DNA of 12,938 bases. Source: Azolla caroliniana. Its lineage: Eukaryota; Plantae; Polypodiophyta. The stretch's first letter is position 1; each line of letters begins with the position of its first letter. The position numbers and the translations under genes are program-made. Below the pieces are notes generated by a model. That model was not told where the DNA came from and did no database searches. It was given only the letters and a program-made list of their open reading frames with translations. Positions 2,105 through 12,938 of the stretch are shown here, in pieces. Location of the stretch: positions 1 to 12,938 of the forward strand of contig JBHGNT010001012.1 in assembly GCA_043228905.1 (NCBI GenBank). Direction: 5' to 3'.

Positions 2105-3497
2105 ATAATTTTAGCCTGTATTATTTGTGGTTTTCATAGGTTGTTGTTGGTTTGATCAGGTCATCATTTATGCAGAATTTTACTAATGAAGCATATTTTG
2201 TTTGGAAAAGAGAGAGAGTGTGTGAATTGAAGAAGAAGACAATGATTAAGAGAGAATAATTGCAAGAAAAGGAAGAGCTCCTCATGACAAGGGAACTAAA
2301 GGAATTTAGTTGATAAAACAGCAAGTGATAGAGGAATAGCCTATCACAAGAGCTTTTGTCCATCAAGTGATAATCAAGAGTTTGAACCTCCCTCCCTACA
2401 AATATAGAAGATGTGCGAGTCAAGTTATTTTACATTCTCTAGACGATTAAAGTGTTATTGTTTACGTAATGAAAATTGATTTATTCAAGGAATAAAAGTT
2501 TTCGGTTTTCATTTCATCCTCTTTGACAAACAATTCTGCATAATCCCATTCTCTTTCCTCCAACCATTGTTTACGTCCACAATCTCCACTTGAATACAGT
2601 CAAGAGCCACCAAGGGAGGGTGGGTAGTTTCGGTGGGTAGAGTCGAGTAGGTCCATTTCTCAACATGCTATGAGGCTCTGGGGGAGGAAATTATCCCATA
2701 GAGTGAGTCGAGCCCGTCTCGCCACGGAGCAACAACATCGCCCGAAATGCGCATGTGTGAAAGCATGGTAGAACCGCAAGGGTTTTGAACTAGGAGAGGA
2801 GTTTAGTGTCTTGTAGTTTGGATTCATGCTTAACTTTTTGGACTTTTGGCTTCCTTTCACACCTTGCTCGTCTCATTCCTAACATTTTTCCTACTCCTAG
2901 CACTCCTAACATCACACTCTCTCTTCTCACTCGTAGTTCTTGTCTCATTGTTAGCACACAATTAGTCACCAAACAATTTTTTTGTTAATCAAGTTTGCAA
3001 TTATAATTAATGAGGACTTTCTCCTCCTCATTCCCTTAATCCCTTCAGTTTCCCTAATCTACTTCGTGCCAATCCCCTTCAAATGGTCCTAACCTTTGTC
3101 TTTTATTGCAAGAATTGAAGTCACATCCTCCATATTAGCAAGAGAATGTTTAAGCTATCATACTTCCTTATGATCATATTTCTCCTTCCTAAGCTACCAT
3201 CTCTACATACTTGTGATGTTGACCACTTTCTCACGTCATGCCATTGGACTTTGCATAACTTATGCGTGAGAAAGGAAATGCAGAATGCAATTGCATTTTC
3301 TAGAACGTTGAAGAAGTTATGACATCGTTTTGTCGATGTAGTAGCATAATAATACCAAATGCTACTCACAACCAAATATGATTTCTACACCCACGTGCCT
3401 AAACATCAACATGTCTCTCTCTCTCACTCCCTGTGTGTACGGAGCTCCAAAATATCCCCGAGTTATTTCAAAAGTGCTTTTTAGGTTTCCAATTTAT

Positions 3498-3515
3498 CCC
3501 CCCCCCCCCCCCCCC
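3498..3515. repeat. Poly(C)18 tract
   Basis: Direct read. Confidence 0.95.
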
Positions 3516-3903
3516 TTCACCTCATACATGACCTTGTTGCTCTTGGACCAATGATACCCCAACCCCCATTTTCAATATGTATGTATGTATGTATGTATAT
3601 GTAGATATGTGTGTGGCACCACCACAAATGTACATACATACATAATATATGTACATATATATATATAAATAACCGGAAATACAACAGTAAAAAGAAAGGA
3701 AAACGTAGCACGGTAATTTGTTTTCTTCTTTTGTTTTTCTCAATTATTATAACGGCTGGAAAAAAAATATAGATTTGTTGGCACGTGGCGGTAATCCCAC
3801 AAAGAAAACCGAATATCCAAACGGGCGGTAGCCGGTCGCTGCAAAATCAGCTTCATGGACTCTCTCTGTCTCTTCTCTCTCATTCTCTCTTTCTCTGTGT
3901 TTG

Positions 3904-3933
3904 CTTCTTCTTCTTCTTCTTCTTCTTCTTCTT
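3904..3933 (+). repeat. (CTT)10 microsatellite in the CT-rich promoter/5' UTR region
   Basis: Direct read; followed by short GAC/TAC triplet runs. Confidence 0.9.
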
Positions 3934-4442
3934 CAACGACGACGACTACTACTGCGACTAACAATCAGATCAAAATATTTTAGAATCATCCGCTCTTTCT
4001 CTGCTGCTGCGCAGACATGATATGATGGTTTCTTCGTCTTCTTCTTCGCCTTCTAACACAGAACCCATCTTTGAAAAATCATCGTATTAACGTAGAGTAG
4101 TGATCCAACAACTGTCTGTTTCTTATTCTATTCTTCTTCATCTTCATCTTTATCATCGTCGTCATTTTCCTCTTTCTCTTCATTTTCTTCTTCTCACAAA
4201 GAACTCATCTCACGAAACTCTTCCTTCTCACTTTTCTTCGTCGTCCATGTCTCTACTGAAGGTAATGCGGCCTCTTCTGCTTCCCCTATCCTCGGACCTA
4301 ACAAATGCTGTACAGGGAATATCTCGTCTGTTCTGACTCTGCTCGGTATGAGAACCCCAACAAAACCGAAGCCAATATTATGGATTAATTACTTTCCCGA
4401 GCAGGAAAGGTTTTGAGTTATAGATGAAGATCAGAATCCGCC

Positions 4443-4602
4443 ATGTCTGAATATATCGCAGTTCAGAAAGGGAAGCTGGTTTCTAGTAGTGGTAAGAACA
4501 GGAAGAAGAAGAAGAAGAAGCAGATAGGAGGTGGGTGTGGGGGCGTCTTTTTACAGATCTTCAATGGAAAGCGACTGTTTTCTTGGAAATCTCTTCCAGA
4601 AG
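4443..4602 (+). CDS. TRM/LONGIFOLIA-family (TON1-recruiting motif; VARLMGL + DUF4378) gene, coding exon 1 of 4
   Basis: ATG in GCCATG context with an in-frame TGA upstream at 4425. Encodes 'GGCGGVFLQIFNGKRLFSWKSLPE', resembling the N-terminal GCxGxFxxxF motif of TRM proteins. Donor AG|GTATGC, phase 1. Confidence 0.8.
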
Positions 4603-4628
4603 GTATGCAATATATGCACATGGAGAGG

Positions 4629-4632
<4 letters not shown>

Positions 4633-4666
<34 letters not shown>
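4633..4666. repeat. (GA)17 microsatellite, intron 1
   Basis: Direct read. Confidence 0.95.
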
Positions 4667-4669
<3 letters not shown>

Positions 4670-4865
4670 TTATCTGTTTCATGTCTTTCTATGCGTACGT
4701 CTGTTTCTAGTTCTATGCCGCCACCATTTGTGCTTATCATGTAATTCATACTTCTTTTTTTGTTTGTTCTCCTCGAAATGAAGCCTCATAAGTACTAGAA
4801 ACACTGTAGGGGTATACGAGAGTAAGTTGGGTTCGTCCTAAATGGGAAACGAGAAGACATTGTGT

Positions 4866-4866
<1 letters not shown>

Positions 4867-4902
<36 letters not shown>
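4867..4902. repeat. (AC)18 microsatellite, intron 1
   Basis: Direct read. Confidence 0.95.
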
Positions 4903-4989: not shown

Positions 4990-5147
4990 GTAAGTTTTCC
5001 TTCATTTTCTTGTCCATTCCTTCTTTTTTGTTGCTGCATAGTACATGGTAGATAGACCTATCGGATATGGCACATAGATCAGCTCACTTAAGTTTCTCAT
5101 TTTTTTTGCATACTTTAAAACTAAGGTAACGGTGAAATTTGAAGCAG

Positions 5148-7011
5148 AATGCAGATGAGAGTATAGGTAGATGTGGACAAGGAGACTCATCAGAAGATGA
5201 TATCCTTAAAACTGAACCCAAAGAGGATGATTTTGTTTTCGAGAATGAACATGAATTTTCACATGGAAAGAAATTACCAAATCTGGTTGCAAGGCTCATG
5301 GGCCTTGAAACAATGCCACCATCTCCAGAGCCTCTTCTTTTTGATGGGAACGAGATGGATCCCGATACAAATGACGACGTTGATTGTAATTCTTTACCAA
5401 AAGTATTGGACTCAATTGAAGATTCAAACAGCAACATTCGTGACATACAACCAACAAGAAGTAAACCTAAGAAGTCAGAAAATGATCATTCTCTTGAGAA
5501 GAAGATCCTTTTCACTCCTAAGGGTTCCTTATCTTGTGCAGATAAGGATAAAGGGGACGTGTATAAATGGATAGGCAGTTCTCGTCGACCTCCCCATCAG
5601 CTCGATTCTTCATTTCCATCTGGTTCTACGCCACCAAAAAGAGGTCCTTATTTTAACAAAGATTCTCTTTCAATTAACAGAGCTACTAATATTCGTGAAA
5701 GAAACTTGCATCAACTGCTTAAGGTGAATCAAACCAGACATGTAGGTTTGGTATCAAAGCCTCGAAATGCTGCTATGTTGAACACTGATAAAAGTAAAGG
5801 CAAGTTTGGTTGTGTTTTAACTCAGAATGAAGAAGAAACTAAGGTGCGAAGCCGGATGCAGAACACAAGTAAGGAAATGGTCAATAAAACTGATAAAAAT
5901 AAGAGTTTGCTGCAAGAGCTTCAAAGGAGGTATAGGTATCAACAAGAATTGACGAAACGAATTGATTCTGAGCTCAAAAAGACCAGAAAGGGATGTGACC
6001 CACATGAGGAGATAAGGAGACGTAGAAGCAAACAAGAAGAAACGAGTAGGAGACTAAGCCAACCAAGTTCAAGATCAATGGGAACTAACAAGTTAAGGCA
6101 ATCTAGCTCCCTTAAACCTAAGCTTACGTCAACAAATACCTTTGGTTCTTCCAAAGCACCAAGAAGTATGTTGTCTTCAAATGCTGTCGAGCTCTCAAAA
6201 AAAATGAGGTCTTGTGTCGAGAGCAATATTGTCCCGACTGTAGCATTGAGTAGCTCTTCTGTAAATGGATGCCCTGAGCAGAGCGAAGAGGGTAGTAATT
6301 GTATCGAGCAAAAAAGAGGCTCTAATATGGCTCTTCATGAGTCTGAAAATGTGTTTGATACAGCATCGATTGATGAGTACTTGAATAGTGAAACCGTAAA
6401 TTGTTTGCAAAGTAGCAGTACTCCTGTGAATAATGCATCTGAATTCATTAGAAATGAAGTGGAGCTATCAAGTCATGATGATGGTGATGGAGCTCATGTT
6501 GTAGGCTATGATAGAGTTCAAGCAAGGTGGGAAAATGATGATAATAGTAATGGTAATGGTAAGGGTTTTGGTGCCAAACGAGTCTTAGATTTTGTAAAGG
6601 CCGAGCGTAGTACTTGTGATTCTCGTTTTGGAGACTCGGGAGACATGGGTTGTTCTTTGCATGCAGAGCTGCTGGACATTAGTAGCCGCACATGTGATTC
6701 GGTTTCACACTCAGAAAAGAATAATGTGTCGGTAATCCTACATGAACTGCTAGCTGCATTGACCTCTTCTAAGTCAGGCTTAGAATCTAAAAGGGATTCC
6801 TATGGTGAAGATTCAAGAAATAAGTGTTCGGAAATGATCTCACCACAGCGTTCAATGGATAGGCAACTCAGAGAAAAGGCTTTTGGGGTTGATTGGGGTT
6901 CAGAAAATACTTTTTGTAACTCAAGTATTGATGGTGGAGATCAAGAGCTTGATTCTCTGTTTGAGGATTCAACTTGTGATAATACAGTAAAGAGTCTCGG
7001 ATCTAAAGAAG
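5148..7011 (+). CDS. TRM-family gene, coding exon 3
   Basis: 1.86-kb open frame containing PNLVARLMGLETMP (~5277-5318) and a long basic/Ser-rich region. Acceptor AAGCAG|; donor AG|GTACAA, phase 1. Confidence 0.88.
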
Positions 7012-7179
7012 GTACAATTATATAAGTTCTTTTCTTGTTGAACCTTATTGAAAATTTACATGTTGATGGGATTTGGAGCACATCATGCACACATGCATTG
7101 CAAATTTTAATATTCACAAATGTTTTGCAAATTTACGATGTTGATGAAGTTGACTAACATCAAACTTTGTGACCTATAG

Positions 7180-7958
7180 CACAAAACACTTGGTTCAAGC
7201 CTAGCCACTCAGAGAGCATGGATTATAGTAATTCCACCATGCAGGACACACAAGTGGTGGACATTGATGCAAGTGAAATAGCGGGAATCAATGGAAGGCC
7301 AGCCAAAGAAGGTCGAGAGTGTTTCCCGGATAGTATTATTGATTGTGATGCTCTCCTCAACACTATATCAAGATTGCATAGTATCAATCCCGAAGCCATA
7401 GGATTGACTCCAAGGATGCCAGGATACAAGAACAACCATCATGATGATAGAGATTATAAGACAATAAGTTGTTCTCCTTTGATTGGCCGAACTCTATCAT
7501 TTCTGAAGCCTGATGATGAGATGCAAAGCTCTGAGCAAGCATTTTCCTTGTCCTCTACTAGCGTGTCTGCCAATGACGAAGAAGAAACCAATAATTCTTG
7601 CAAAGTTGGTGGTGATACATGCCAAAATGAGGATGCTTTAGTTCAAAATAAAAAGTTAATCTCTGATTGCATCAATGAAGCATTCCGAAGCTTGGGAAGG
7701 CAAATGTATGCTATCTCTTCTTTCACCAACCCGTCTTCGGCTTCTCATGTCCTCAGTAAGGTGTACAAACAAATTGATGATTGGAAGGGGATGTCGATCG
7801 GCATGAACTTGGATGATATGGTAGAGAAAGAAATGAATACTCACATTGGAGGATGGCATGGTCATCATGACTTGGGTGATGAGGCTGAGGAAGCAGAGGT
7901 CATAGAGAGCACGATATTCAATCGTTTGATTGAGGAATTCGTCCTCGAGCTAATGTGA
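7180..7958 (+). CDS. TRM-family gene, coding exon 4 (DUF4378 / C-terminal TON1-binding M2 motif)
   Basis: Branch-like GACTAAC at 7152-7158 and acceptor TATAG| at 7179, in frame with ORF 7218-7958. Motifs 'KKLISDCINEAF', 'LDDMVEKEM....GGW' and 'IESTIFNRLIEEFVLEL*'. The joined CDS is 160+53+1864+779 = 2856 nt = 951 aa + stop. Confidence 0.88.
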
Positions 7959-8418: not shown

Positions 8419-9404
8419 CACTGATGATGAACAAGAAGCACTAGAAAGTAAATGCCAATATTGGAAAGACTGATTGCTGAAATGTAAAGAACATATGGGT
8501 TCATGCTCCTAGAAAGGACATTGACTTTCATACCGGAAAGAGTGATAATGCATTCCTAGCTTTTGCCTCATCTTGGCTTCTTGTAATGTCAATATGAATG
8601 CGTTGTTATTCTCATGAATTGCATCATAAATGTTATGCGTTACGTTTTGTAAAATGAAATATTCATTTTGAGGTTGTTTCTTTATGGTTTTGCATAGATG
8701 GGAGGGAATCAGTGTAGGTTTAGGATATTGAGATCCACTATTCCTTCAAATTTTGAGAATAAAGATGCTTCAATTGTAAAATTCTTAACCCCTTTTCGAA
8801 TTGAATTGTCTTCTCGAATTGAACAAAAAATATAAGACATAAAAGCATCAACAGACTTTGTGGGCTATAGAACAAGTTGGAAGTAGCCCTTTGTGGGTAA
8901 TAAGAATAGACTGTCCTATTCTCTATTGTACAAGTTTGAGGTGAAATTGACAATTTCTCAATTCATTTAGTAGCGAGCTCTTGGTTTCTCCTTGCACACC
9001 TGAAAGTCCTCTTCGAGTAAGCTAGCTAACTAAGCAGACCTTGTTGGGCTTGTTAGCCACAAATGGGGTCTTTTATGAGGGTGGATTGTATATTGGGGTT
9101 TGTAGAGAATCACCAATTAAGTGGTATTTATGCTATATCCTTGTAACACACTACCTACAAATGTTGTTATGAATCGGTGGAGCAGAGAGCCAAGATAGAA
9201 TAGTTGAGGGAAGAAAAACTCTGTTTCTAAAAGGGGGAAAAAACAGAAGATACGATGGTTGTAATAATATCGCCTCTCTATCACAGAGGGGTTTTTCTCA
9301 TACACCCTATATCTCGAAAAGGGGAAAAATAAAGTAAAAGGTAAAAGACAGGAGCACAAGCCATTTTGGCCTTTTCACACTATGTACATGTCTCTATGTA
9401 CATA

Positions 9405-9711
9405 TGTTAAGAATTAGGTAATTAAGCAAGAGTTAATTAGTACCTAATTATGTGATTAAGTTAAGTGCGGAAGATTATGTGATATGTGTGTGTATGTGTG
9501 TGAGAGGAAGAGAGAGAGGAAGCTACACTTATGAACATCCCCTATCTTGTGTTGTTCATAAGTGTAGCTTCCTCTCTCTCTTCCTCACACACATACACAC
9601 ACATATCACATAATCTTCTGCACTTAACTTAATCACATAATTAGGTACTAATTCTTAACTCTTGTTACGAATTAGGTAATTAACCCATACTTAATCACCT
9701 AATTCTTAACA
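9405..9711. repeat. Palindromic (fold-back) 5' LTR-derived segment: arms 9405-9537 and 9553-9711, 15-nt loop
   Basis: The left arm is the reverse complement of the right arm apart from 2 substitutions and 3 indels (about 25, 3 and 2 nt). It begins TGTTAAGAATTAGGT and ends ACCTAATTCTTAACA. Confidence 0.95.
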
Positions 9712-9721
9712 TGGTATTAGA
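9712..9721 (+). other. Primer binding site, tRNA-iMet type
   Basis: TGGTATTAGA directly after ...TTAACA; 9/10 match to the canonical TGGTATCAGA. Confidence 0.8.
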
Positions 9722-9880
9722 CGTGTGGTTTAGAAAACCCATTAAGCCCACCCAACTCTGTGATTGTGTGTTCGAGACGCCGACGACAAAATCCGACTAT
9801 CGTCTATCATAGTGCCGCTACGTAGCACGTGTACGTGATCGAAGGAAGAAAAGTAAAAGAAGAGAAGACACTATATCAAA

Positions 9881-12475
9881 ATGAACTCACAAATGGGTAG
9901 CTCGCTCCCTAGTGAAAAGTTAGACCAGAGCAATTATTCATCTTGGGAGTACAAGATGACCCAATACCTTGTCAGCCAAGGGTATTGGAGCTACATCAAC
10001 GGCGCACAAGAAAATCGACTCGACTTGAAGAACGCCGACTATGCAACATGGGAGCAAGCGGCGAGTCGAGTCATGTATTGCTTGGCAACATGTGTCCATG
10101 ACCACATGCTTAGCCACATTCGAGACACCAAGAAGCCTAAAGAAGCGTGGGCGAACTTAAAGAAAATGTTCGCCACCAACACAACTGCCCGAAAGCTTCA
10201 ACTTCGACAAGAGTTGAACAACATTCGGCAAAAAGACATGTTCGTGTCGGACTACACCGCCAAGATCAAGAGCATTTGCGACTCGCTTGGCTCCATCAAA
10301 ATAAATGTTGATGAAGACAAGATGGTTCAAGTATGCTTTGGCGGCCTCTCACAATCGTGATTTGACTCGTTGAGGACGATAGTCTCGGTGAGGGAAAACC
10401 CTCTGTTCTTCGACCTTCAATCAATGCTATTGGTTGAAGAGAACCACGTCCAAACCAAAATCAAGACATCGGAAGGACAAATGTTCTTCCCGAATTCGGA
10501 TGGTGGCCGAGAACGAAATCGGGTGGTAGAAGAGGTCGATTCGACCCATCGAATGAAGGGAACTCAAGCCATTGAGGAACCTTCGGAAGAAGGGGGCGCT
10601 TCCATGCTGAACAAGGTCGGAAAACGTGGCCCATCACTTTCAATTATTGCGCCGAATTACGCCGCCAACTACGAATAGGATGACTACGATGGACTATTCG
10701 TAATGAGGCATAGAGTGAACTTTATGTCGGCCTTCGACTCCGCAAGCACCTCCAATTCGGAAGACGTGTGGTTCGTCGATTCCGGCGCCTCACATCACAT
10801 GACATCCCACGAAGAGTGGTTTAGTGATTTGCGCACACCCGATCGACCCAGTGTCATAGAGACGGGAGACAACACCACACATCCCATTTGGCACATCGGC
10901 AATGTCCCATTCGGGAAAGAAGGTGAGCAAACTTGCATCAAGAATGTCTTGCACATGCCCACAATAATGAAGAATTTGGTCTCAGTCGGCCAAATCGTGG
11001 AGCAAGGCATGTAAGTCCGCTTCAACAACGAAGGTTGTTTCATCGAGAAAGATGGCCGACTCATAACCAAGGGATGGAGAGACAATCGAATGTTCATCCT
11101 TGATTTGAATGAGGTGAAATCAACCATGTATGCTAAAGTTCTTAAAATCGAGACGAACATCGAGTTGCGGCACTAAGAGAATTGGCCACATAAACCTCCA
11201 ACGGCTTCGAGCAATGCAATCAAAGGGAGTCGTCATCGGACTTCCGGCATTCGAGTCGACCAAGTATGCAAAGCATGCCAACTCGGCAAACAACATCGAC
11301 TCCCATTTACGAAGGAGAGCTCCGCAAGCAAAGGCCTCCTCGACATCATACACTCGGATGTATGGGAGCCGGCTCAAACGCCGACGATCGACGAATACCG
11401 ATTGTACGTCACCTTCATCGACGACTACTCGTGCTATTCGATCTTCCCGATGAAGAAGAAGAGCGAAGTGTTCTCCCACTTCCAAAAGGGGCAAGTCGAA
11501 AAAGAAACCGGTCGGCACATTCGATGCCTACGATCGGATGGGGGAAATGAGTACTTCTCCGATGAATTCACCTCCTACCTCAAAAGTGAAGGTATTCGGA
11601 GAGAATTCTCATGCCGACACACACCCCAACAAAATGGAGTCGCCGAAAGGAAAAATCGGCAAATACTCGAGGTAGCATGCGCCATGATGCATGAGAAGCA
11701 CATGCTGAACCTCTATTGGGCAGAAGCGGCATCCATGGTCGTCTATCTCATGAATCGGTGTACCACTAATGGAGTGCATGAGGTAACTCAATATGAGCTC
11801 CTTGTCGGACGGAAGTCGATCCTGTCACACCTCAAGGTGTTCGGAATCATTGCGAATGTACACATCCTGAACGAACAACGACAGAAGCTTGACGTGAAGT
11901 CGGAGGAATGTATCCTCATAGGATACTCGTCCGAGAGGAAGGCATACAAGTGCTATAACCCTTCGACCCGAGCGGTTCGGTTGAGTCGAGACGTAGTCTT
12001 CGATGAATCGGCATCTTGGTATAAGCCTGATTCGACTCCACCTGACTCGACTGAGAAAGAGTTGAACGTCAACTCAGAGGACAATATTCGGACAAGTCCT
12101 CTACCATAGGACAATCCAAGCCCGCGTAAGCCTTCAAGCATTCCAAGCACATCGTGGCCAAGTACGACCTTGGACAAAGGCAATGGTAAGATGCCGGAAT
12201 ACGAAGGCGACCACCCTGACGACAGTGATTCAGATGAGTCAGCTCCCTCACTAGACAGTGAGTTTGGTGTACCCATCATGTGGACACCCGGAGTAAAGAA
12301 GGCGCTTACATTAGCGAGTGAAAACGTTCGACGTTCATCTAGAGCTAAGAACCCCATCACCCGGTTCGATGACAACGAGTACATGGCCCATCACTATGCC
12401 TTCGCGATGAATGTAGCGGCCGAACAAGAGCCCAAGAGCTCCACCAAAGCGGCTCATAACCCACGATGGGTGGCA
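9881..12475 (+). pseudogene. Disrupted copia gag-pol: Gag (UBN2-type), protease, GAG-pre-integrase, integrase; truncated just before RT
   Basis: 'KLDQSNYSSWEYKM..YL..QGYW', 'WFVDSGASHHM' (10769-10801), 'KNLVSVGQI', 'RIGHIN', 'CKACQLGKQHR', 'FIDDYS', 'RSDGGNEY', 'PQQNGVAERKNR', 'IGYS..RKAYKCY', 'RRSSR', 'EP.S...A...PRW'. In-frame stops at 10358, 10676, 11012 and 12107, plus frameshifts. Confidence 0.92.
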
Positions 12476-12634
12476 AGAGTCGACCTTCGCCCACACACTA
12501 CAAGCCTTTGTCACCGGCTTGAGGGGGAGGAATCGAGATTGCCTCGAAAAGGTCGAAGAAAGCCGAAGGCCAAACGGAAGCACACGAAGCCGACGAAAGC
12601 CAAAGCGGATGTCGGACACCTCACACTTGAGCTT

Positions 12635-12643
12635 GAGGGGGCG
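12635..12643 (+). other. Polypurine tract
   Basis: GAGGGGGCG immediately before the TG at 12644. Confidence 0.8.
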
Positions 12644-12938
12644 TGTTGAGATATCAAGCTCAACTTAGTTTAGTTGGTTAGTTAACCATGTAACTTTGTA
12701 GTTACCTAGATAGAATCTAGTTAGAAGTGTTGACTATAACGCCTTAAATAGGACCTTGTACTTAAGTGGGATATTCTAGATCCTCCACTCCCAAGTACAT
12801 TTAATATAGGACTTACACCTTTGTACCTATATTCTCCTCATACATGTGCACCCTTGCACATGAGATCTATATATACCTCATTGTAGGTATTTTTGTATTT
12901 GATGATGCTTTCTAATATAGTTACTCATCCCCCATCTT
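12644..12938 (+). repeat. 3' LTR of the copia element (partial: U3 and start of R)
   Basis: Starts TGTTGAGA after the PPT (7/8 inverted match to the ...TCTTAACA end at 9704-9711). TATATATA at 12868-12875. The last 13 nt match the palindrome loop region at 12/13. Confidence 0.8.

Follow-up and report, generated by a model that had tools for sequence, protein, structure and literature searches.

A palindromic 5′ LTR in a degenerate Copia element of Azolla caroliniana, most likely the fossil of a reverse-transcription priming accident

Introduction

Self-priming and mispriming by minus-strand strong-stop DNA, (−)sssDNA, are well known in vitro, where nucleocapsid protein suppresses them (PMC6088434); in HIV-1, self-priming of (−)sssDNA is cTAR-dependent (Guo et al. 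1997, reviewed in PMC6088434). The retroviral self-priming products are intramolecular dead-end hairpins formed in vitro, and their loop consists of the 3′ end of the (−)sssDNA in inverted orientation. Reverse transcriptases (RTs) can initiate synthesis from 3′ overlaps of only two nucleotides, provided that these contain C or G (PMC3035444; cited in PMC4668388), a clamping activity that is an in vitro trait of retroviral and some other RTs (PMC3035444). Among plants, complex insertions of LTR retrotransposons in the Triticeae have been attributed to template switching (Sabot and Schulman 2007, PMC1950507). A literature search found no in vivo precedent for an integrated fold-back product primed by (−)sssDNA; a maize preprint on “self-priming” was discarded as a precedent because it concerns RNA hairpins and siRNAs, not reverse transcription.

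The Copia copy described here, from the plant Azolla caroliniana, is like the retroviral self-priming products in that the 3′ end of (−)sssDNA would have primed on minus-sense DNA, with no transfer to the 3′ R, to give an inverted R-U5 followed by R-U5. Unlike those products, it has a direct-orientation loop that comes from upstream of R, it is joined to a primer-binding site (PBS) and gag, and it is chromosomal. Its junction is a two-nucleotide CA/TG overlap with a C/G pair, the minimum that supports RT-initiated synthesis (PMC3035444), and clamping of the kind seen in vitro may apply to this plant Copia case by analogy. The copy also resembles the Triticeae insertions, in which aberrant strand transfer led to integrated plant elements with an abnormal LTR arrangement; those cases, however, are direct-orientation, shared-LTR (tandem) structures, and PMC1950507 mentions no inverted, hairpin or palindromic LTRs.

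Results

A 307-bp palindrome sits in the place of the 5′ LTR

We analysed a window of 12,938 nt of plant DNA (contig JBHGNT010001012.1 of A. caroliniana assembly GCA_043228905.1); all coordinates are positions in this window, whose last base is 12938. A near-perfect palindrome of 307 bp (9405–9711) sits where the 5′ LTR of a Copia element belongs. Alignment of the reverse complement of its left arm (9405–9537, 133 nt) with its right arm (9553–9711, 159 nt) gave 129 matches, two mismatches and three indels of 2, 3 and 25 nt, with 129/131 aligned bases identical between the arms, which are separated by a 15-nt loop (9538–9552). Folded as single-stranded DNA, the palindrome reached −133.8 kcal/mol, compared with −24.9 ± 3.6 for shuffled sequences (z = −30).

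The palindrome is bounded by TG..CA termini. The left arm, on the minus strand, opens with TGTTAAG at 9405, and the right arm, on the plus strand, closes with CTTAACA at 9711; the first motif is the reverse complement of the second. Directly after CTTAACA, the PBS TGGTATTAGACG starts (9712–9723, plus strand). It is of a degenerate initiator-Met tRNA type and agrees at about 9–10 of 12 bases with TGGTATCAGAGC, which we take to be the canonical initiator-Met PBS. No inverted PBS was found beyond the left arm, where the flank closes in TGTACATA, and the last five bases of that flank, ACATA (9400–9404), are a candidate target-site duplication. The coordinates and the arm and loop lengths, together with the absence of an inverted PBS past the left arm, had all been reported in the original prediction, and re-alignment returned the same values. 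In the left flank, at 9380–9403, CTATGTACAT is present twice, 14 nt apart, forming a small tandem duplication directly left of the insertion point.

The palindrome adjoins a degenerate Ty1/copia element

The PBS is followed by a degenerate Ty1/copia element with gag, PR and INT and no RT or RNase H. Its gag region (9881–10360), which has an in-frame stop inside, matched the Pfam family Retrotran_gag_2 (E = 8e-19) and also Retrotran_gag_3. It is followed by a Pol beta-barrel domain of protease-proximal pol (10703–11014; Pol_BBD, E = 4e-23) and by a partial integrase core with an SH3-like domain (11402–12109; SH3_retrovirus, E = 1e-27; rve, E = 3e-4, below the Pfam cut-off). The gag and pol domains, all on the plus strand, lie mostly in one frame, with several stops and at least one frameshift. 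A residual linker ORF and a polypurine tract (PPT, about 12630–12643) occupy 12170–12643 (plus strand), with no Pfam family found on 12170–12649. The 3′ LTR, also on the plus strand, opens with TGTTGAG at 12644 and is represented by its first 295 nt only (U3, 12644–12938), since the window ends 7 nt before the probable start of R. Neither RT nor RNase H was found: with only about 535 nt between the end of integrase and the PPT and 3′ LTR, both must be missing.

Measured against the usual features of Ty1/copia, the copy has a Copia-type gag (both Retrotran_gag families) and an initiator-Met-type PBS, TGGTATTAGACG, directly after the 5′ LTR. Its domains run from Pol_BBD to the integrase core and SH3, with no RT present to place relative to integrase. 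Two direct U3-R-U5 LTRs were not found; the 5′ end consists instead of R-U5 plus an inverted copy, without U3. The copy is an aberrant member of Ty1/copia and does not have the normal structure of the group. In blastn searches within the window, the U3 sequence at 12644–12925 did not recur near 9405, and the first ~280 nt of the 3′ LTR (from 12644) did not recur anywhere else in the window, in agreement with earlier claims that this sequence is absent from the 5′ end and that the copy lacks a 5′ U3 promoter. Judged from its sequence, the element is inert today: it lacks a 5′ promoter, RT and RNase H, and it carries several stops. The one activity it could plausibly have would be that of a hairpin-forming sequence if read-through transcribed.

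Two other element classes were considered and rejected. The locus is not a fold-back or TIR DNA transposon or a MITE, because the arms are homologous to the R-U5 of direct LTRs and the palindrome adjoins a Copia PBS and gag. Nor is it a DIRS-like retroelement, as an integrase core and a retroviral-type SH3 domain were found and there was no match to a tyrosine-recombinase family. Elsewhere in the window, a gypsy-type gag ORF of another retroelement (Retrotrans_gag, Ty3_capsid) lies at 158–1345 on the minus strand, and a plant gene lies on the plus strand at 5139–7958 in two ORFs, with a VARLMGL motif (5139–7025) and a DUF4378 domain (7218–7958). Microsatellites of the (CTT)n, (GA)n and (AC)n types abound upstream of this gene, at 3400–4900.

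Related LTRs identify the left arm as an added inverted copy

Metagenome contigs were screened with a 20-mer from the arms, which yielded four contigs (L001–L004); pattern scans of viral contigs gave no match. In the alignment to the relatives, the right arm and the piece of the 3′ LTR each had a row of its own.

Contigs L004 and L002 carry normal LTRs of a related family. Their TATA-region segment is 80–87% identical to window 12813–12935 and passes unbroken into ..TCATCCCCCAT..TCTT..TGTTCATAAGTGTAGC.. and on to the LTR end, which in the relatives reads TTAACA (TTGACA in L002); the downstream part of both is 79–86% identical to the loop plus right arm. The two contigs are colinear with window 12813–12935 followed by 9536–9711. 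The right arm is homologous to L004:253–388 and L002:142–262, and also to L003 and L001, while the reverse complement of the left arm is 84% identical to L004:252–388. The counterpart of the loop (plus strand) in the alignment is the TCATCCCCCAT..TCTT..TG segment, present in L002, L004 and window 12926–12938, and TCATCCCCC stands at the junction point both in the relatives and in the window's own 3′ LTR. Inverted repeats of at least 25 nt were absent from L001–L004, so that the palindrome was rejected as the family's normal LTR on the strength of four related copies.

Since L004 and L002 are colinear with the window and have no inverted repeat, the loop and right arm represent the original LTR and the left arm the added copy. 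By this homology, loop and right arm together form the regular 3′-terminal ~176 nt of the LTR, normally oriented and adjoining the PBS. The left arm, on the same alignments, is an inverted duplicate standing in for about 280 nt of U3, and the palindrome is built from the last ~157 bases of the LTR plus their inverted copy. The architecture given in the original prediction, an inverted R-U5 followed by R-U5 and PBS without a 5′ U3, is therefore borne out by the normal LTRs of L004 and L002.

A link to the 3′ LTR had been drawn from a 13-nt match between 9536–9548 and 12926–12938. The match is real but at chance level alone (blastn E = 11), and it was dropped as stand-alone evidence for LTR continuity; it is meaningful only via the related LTRs. 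The predicted continuation of the 3′ LTR into right-arm sequence is supported by these relatives, metagenome contigs with 80–87% identity. In L004, positions 31–215 hold three tandem copies, about 61 bp each, of a TATA-containing U3 segment homologous to window 12842–12902.

The inner end of the inverted arm lies at the probable start of R

The dinucleotide CA at 9536–9537 belongs both to the direct LTR (..TCATCCCC..) and to the inverted arm (..TGAACA), forming a 2-nt microhomology at the junction. The inverted copy unambiguously spans 9555–9711, beginning from TTCATAAG, and the TG at 9553–9554 is the complement of the shared CA.

Two independent lines of evidence bear on what lies at this inner end. 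The first comes from L001:385–719 and L003:928–1250, which share a 335-bp unit with 86.6% identity. The last ~135 nt of this unit are homologous to the right arm, whereas its upstream ~190 nt are unrelated to the window U3, and homology to the window starts exactly at (G)TTCATAAG, which is the inner end of the inverted arm. The unit is followed by a flank that is not a PBS, and it has the appearance of a short LTR family related to the window through R-U5 and not through U3.

The second is promoter spacing. The 3′ LTR has two candidate TATA boxes, TATATATAC at 12869–12877 and a TATA-like AATATAG at 12914–12920 that is conserved in the window, L004 and L002. AATATAG precedes TTCATAAG by 29 nt in the window (projected through the 13-nt overlap) and by 31 nt in L004; a 25-nt insertion in L002 makes the distance 56 nt. 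The usual distance from TATA box to transcription start is ~30 nt. An alternative start, the CA at 9536, is only 10–11 nt after AATATAG and 57 nt after TATATATAC. The junction had originally been placed about 50 nt past TATATATAC; AATATAG, 29 nt before the inner end of the arm, is the better promoter candidate.

From the L001/L003 homology boundary and the AATATAG spacing, we place the probable start of R at about 9555 (TTCATAAG). The right arm would then be the R-U5 part of the LTR, the loop the tail of U3 just upstream of R, and the inverted arm one complete (−) strong-stop DNA, from the exact U5 terminus to the start of R.

The insertion in L002 (93–117) lies between AATATAG and TCATCCCCC and includes AGCTACACT; this is the inverse of the AGTGTAGCT found where R starts (p about 0.01 by shuffling). 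It may be a miniature fold-back at a junction site equivalent to that of the window.

The two arms differ at a U5-terminal hairpin

With two substitutions and three indels between them, the arms either differed from the outset or diverged later. The related LTRs side with the left arm at the two substitutions and at the 2-nt (CT)n indel, and with the right arm at the 25-nt indel. What the left arm lacks there, 25 nt, corresponds to the loop plus one stem of a U5-terminal stem-loop of 49 nt (9663–9711, plus strand; 21-nt arms, 7-nt loop) that adjoins the PBS and is recognised as an inverted repeat and in the minus-strand fold. The arms may derive from two slightly different packaged RNAs, in which case their ~1.5% divergence need not date the insertion.

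Both arms also contain an insertion that is absent from L002 and L004: 31 nt in the right arm (9648–9678, plus strand; alignment columns 268–295) and a shortened version in the left (about 9427–9445). In the right arm, the inserted bases themselves form a small palindrome, CTAATTCTTAAC-TCT-TGTTACGAATTAG, made of LTR-end sequence, which suggests an older strand-switch at the U5-terminal hairpin.

Spare (−)sssDNA as the proposed primer of the plus strand

We propose, with a probability of roughly 0.6, that the 5′ LTR was misbuilt during reverse transcription, when a spare (−)sssDNA primed the plus strand in place of the PPT primer. The left arm would be this (−)sssDNA, reaching from its 5′ end at the U5/PBS boundary to a 3′ end that complements the base at which R begins. 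Particles normally contain two RNAs that each bring a tRNA primer and can thus supply a second (−)sssDNA; the model requires two such molecules per particle. A spare (−)sssDNA, for instance from the second packaged RNA, would miss the first jump, and its 3′ end would clamp by two bases to minus-strand DNA 17 nt upstream of R. RT would then extend this end across the final 17 nt of U3, across R and U5 and into the PBS templated by the tRNA, yielding a surrogate plus-strand strong-stop DNA with the structure U5′-R′-(17 nt of U3)-R-U5-PBS. Like normal plus-strand strong-stop DNA, the surrogate has the PBS at its 3′ end, which makes a second jump possible. After that jump, the minus strand would copy the surrogate as far as its 5′ end, exactly at the U5 terminus, and the finished cDNA would read U5′-R′-(17 nt of U3)-R-U5-PBS-gag...PPT-U3-R-U5, with both termini of U5 type. 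In a mirror version, the nascent minus strand would switch onto the 3′ end of the spare (−)sssDNA and give the same product.

Several features of the locus fit this sequence of events. An exact U5 outer end without an inverted PBS is expected if the template or primer strand ended at the former tRNA primer, and the direct orientation of the loop indicates that it was copied from a template containing U3. Only one of seven bases distinguishes the inverted U5 end, TGTTAAG, from a normal U3 end, TGTTGAG, which makes recognition of a double-U5 cDNA by integrase plausible.

The original prediction had offered two reverse-transcription routes. Of these, a template switch involving minus strong-stop DNA fits better, and a plain fold-back is disfavoured by the direct loop of ~17 nt. 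Simple self-priming, or snap-back, of (−)sssDNA serving as plus-strand strong-stop DNA was rejected, as it predicts a hairpin of R-U5 only with an inverted 3′-end loop, and 9538–9552 is direct relative to L002, L004 and the 3′ LTR. Folding predicted no strong hairpin at the 3′ end of the inferred (−)sssDNA.

Alternative explanations

A rearrangement after integration has a modest chance of being the true origin. It could have been a replication or repair template switch accompanied by deletion of U3, or a deletion between two head-to-head LTRs. Replication-based template switching typically leaves short inverted duplications with 2-nt microhomology, and the indels between the arms also fit such an origin. 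For the inverted copy, however, chance would have had to place one end on the exact U5 terminus and the other on the probable U3/R boundary, at ~1 in 160 each, and fusion of head-to-head LTRs would have needed near-symmetric breakpoints. A simple post-insertion inversion, which had been listed among the earlier alternatives, is excluded: R-U5 is present twice and so was duplicated, not merely flipped.

An intramolecular snap-back in which transcription began further upstream appears improbable. Here the 5′ end of the RNA would lie at ~9536 (CA), and a minus strand that had read through the PBS, U5 and R would fold over the 15-nt loop and copy its own R-U5, with a stop or trimming at the U5/PBS boundary creating an integrase-competent end. 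CA is a typical plant initiator dinucleotide, and this scheme would accommodate both the direction of the loop and the 2-nt overlap. The start it assumes nevertheless has poor promoter geometry, being the one 10–11 nt after AATATAG and 57 nt after TATATATAC; synthesis would have no reason to halt exactly at the U5/PBS boundary; the product would be a covalently closed hairpin end, not a free att end; and the coincidence of the inner end of the arm with the L001/L003 homology boundary is left unexplained. Self-priming by snap-back is, for its part, a known reaction in vitro (PMC6088434).

An artefact of sequencing or assembly, for instance a chimeric fold-back read, is very improbable: palindromes are a known product of library chimeras, but these arms are non-identical (2 substitutions and 3 indels, the longest 25 nt), they halt at the precise LTR terminus beside unrelated flank with no continuation, and they enclose 15 nt of genuine LTR sequence as an asymmetric loop.

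Discussion

The palindrome is most likely a rare fossil of a priming accident in reverse transcription whose product was still able to integrate. Aberrant strand transfer is an event type that is already known; we prefer mispriming by (−)sssDNA over a plain fold-back with moderate confidence. The retrovirus literature treats misprimed strong-stop DNA as an in vitro dead end suppressed by nucleocapsid protein. If our reading of the copy as a product of (−)sssDNA priming is correct, it represents such a misprimed product that was rescued and inserted in vivo via two U5-type ends.

The copy would also record the length of the (−)sssDNA, and hence the U3/R boundary, of a plant Copia family without RNA data. 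LTR finders that require two direct repeats miss such copies or place their boundaries wrongly.

If further fold-back LTRs of this genome have the same anatomy, their frequency would offer a natural gauge of how faithful strand transfer is, and they might supply hairpin RNAs directed at active relatives. Mu killer is a natural hairpin-RNA (siRNA) trigger against MuDR. On a more speculative and rather doubtful view, priming of the plus strand by spare (−)sssDNA might be a recurrent, family-independent side pathway in this plant that generates integrase-competent double-U5 cDNAs. Each fossil would then mark the RNA 5′ end of its family to the base, and the U3-less R-U5 hairpin copies might act as siRNA triggers against their own families, as Mu killer does on MuDR.
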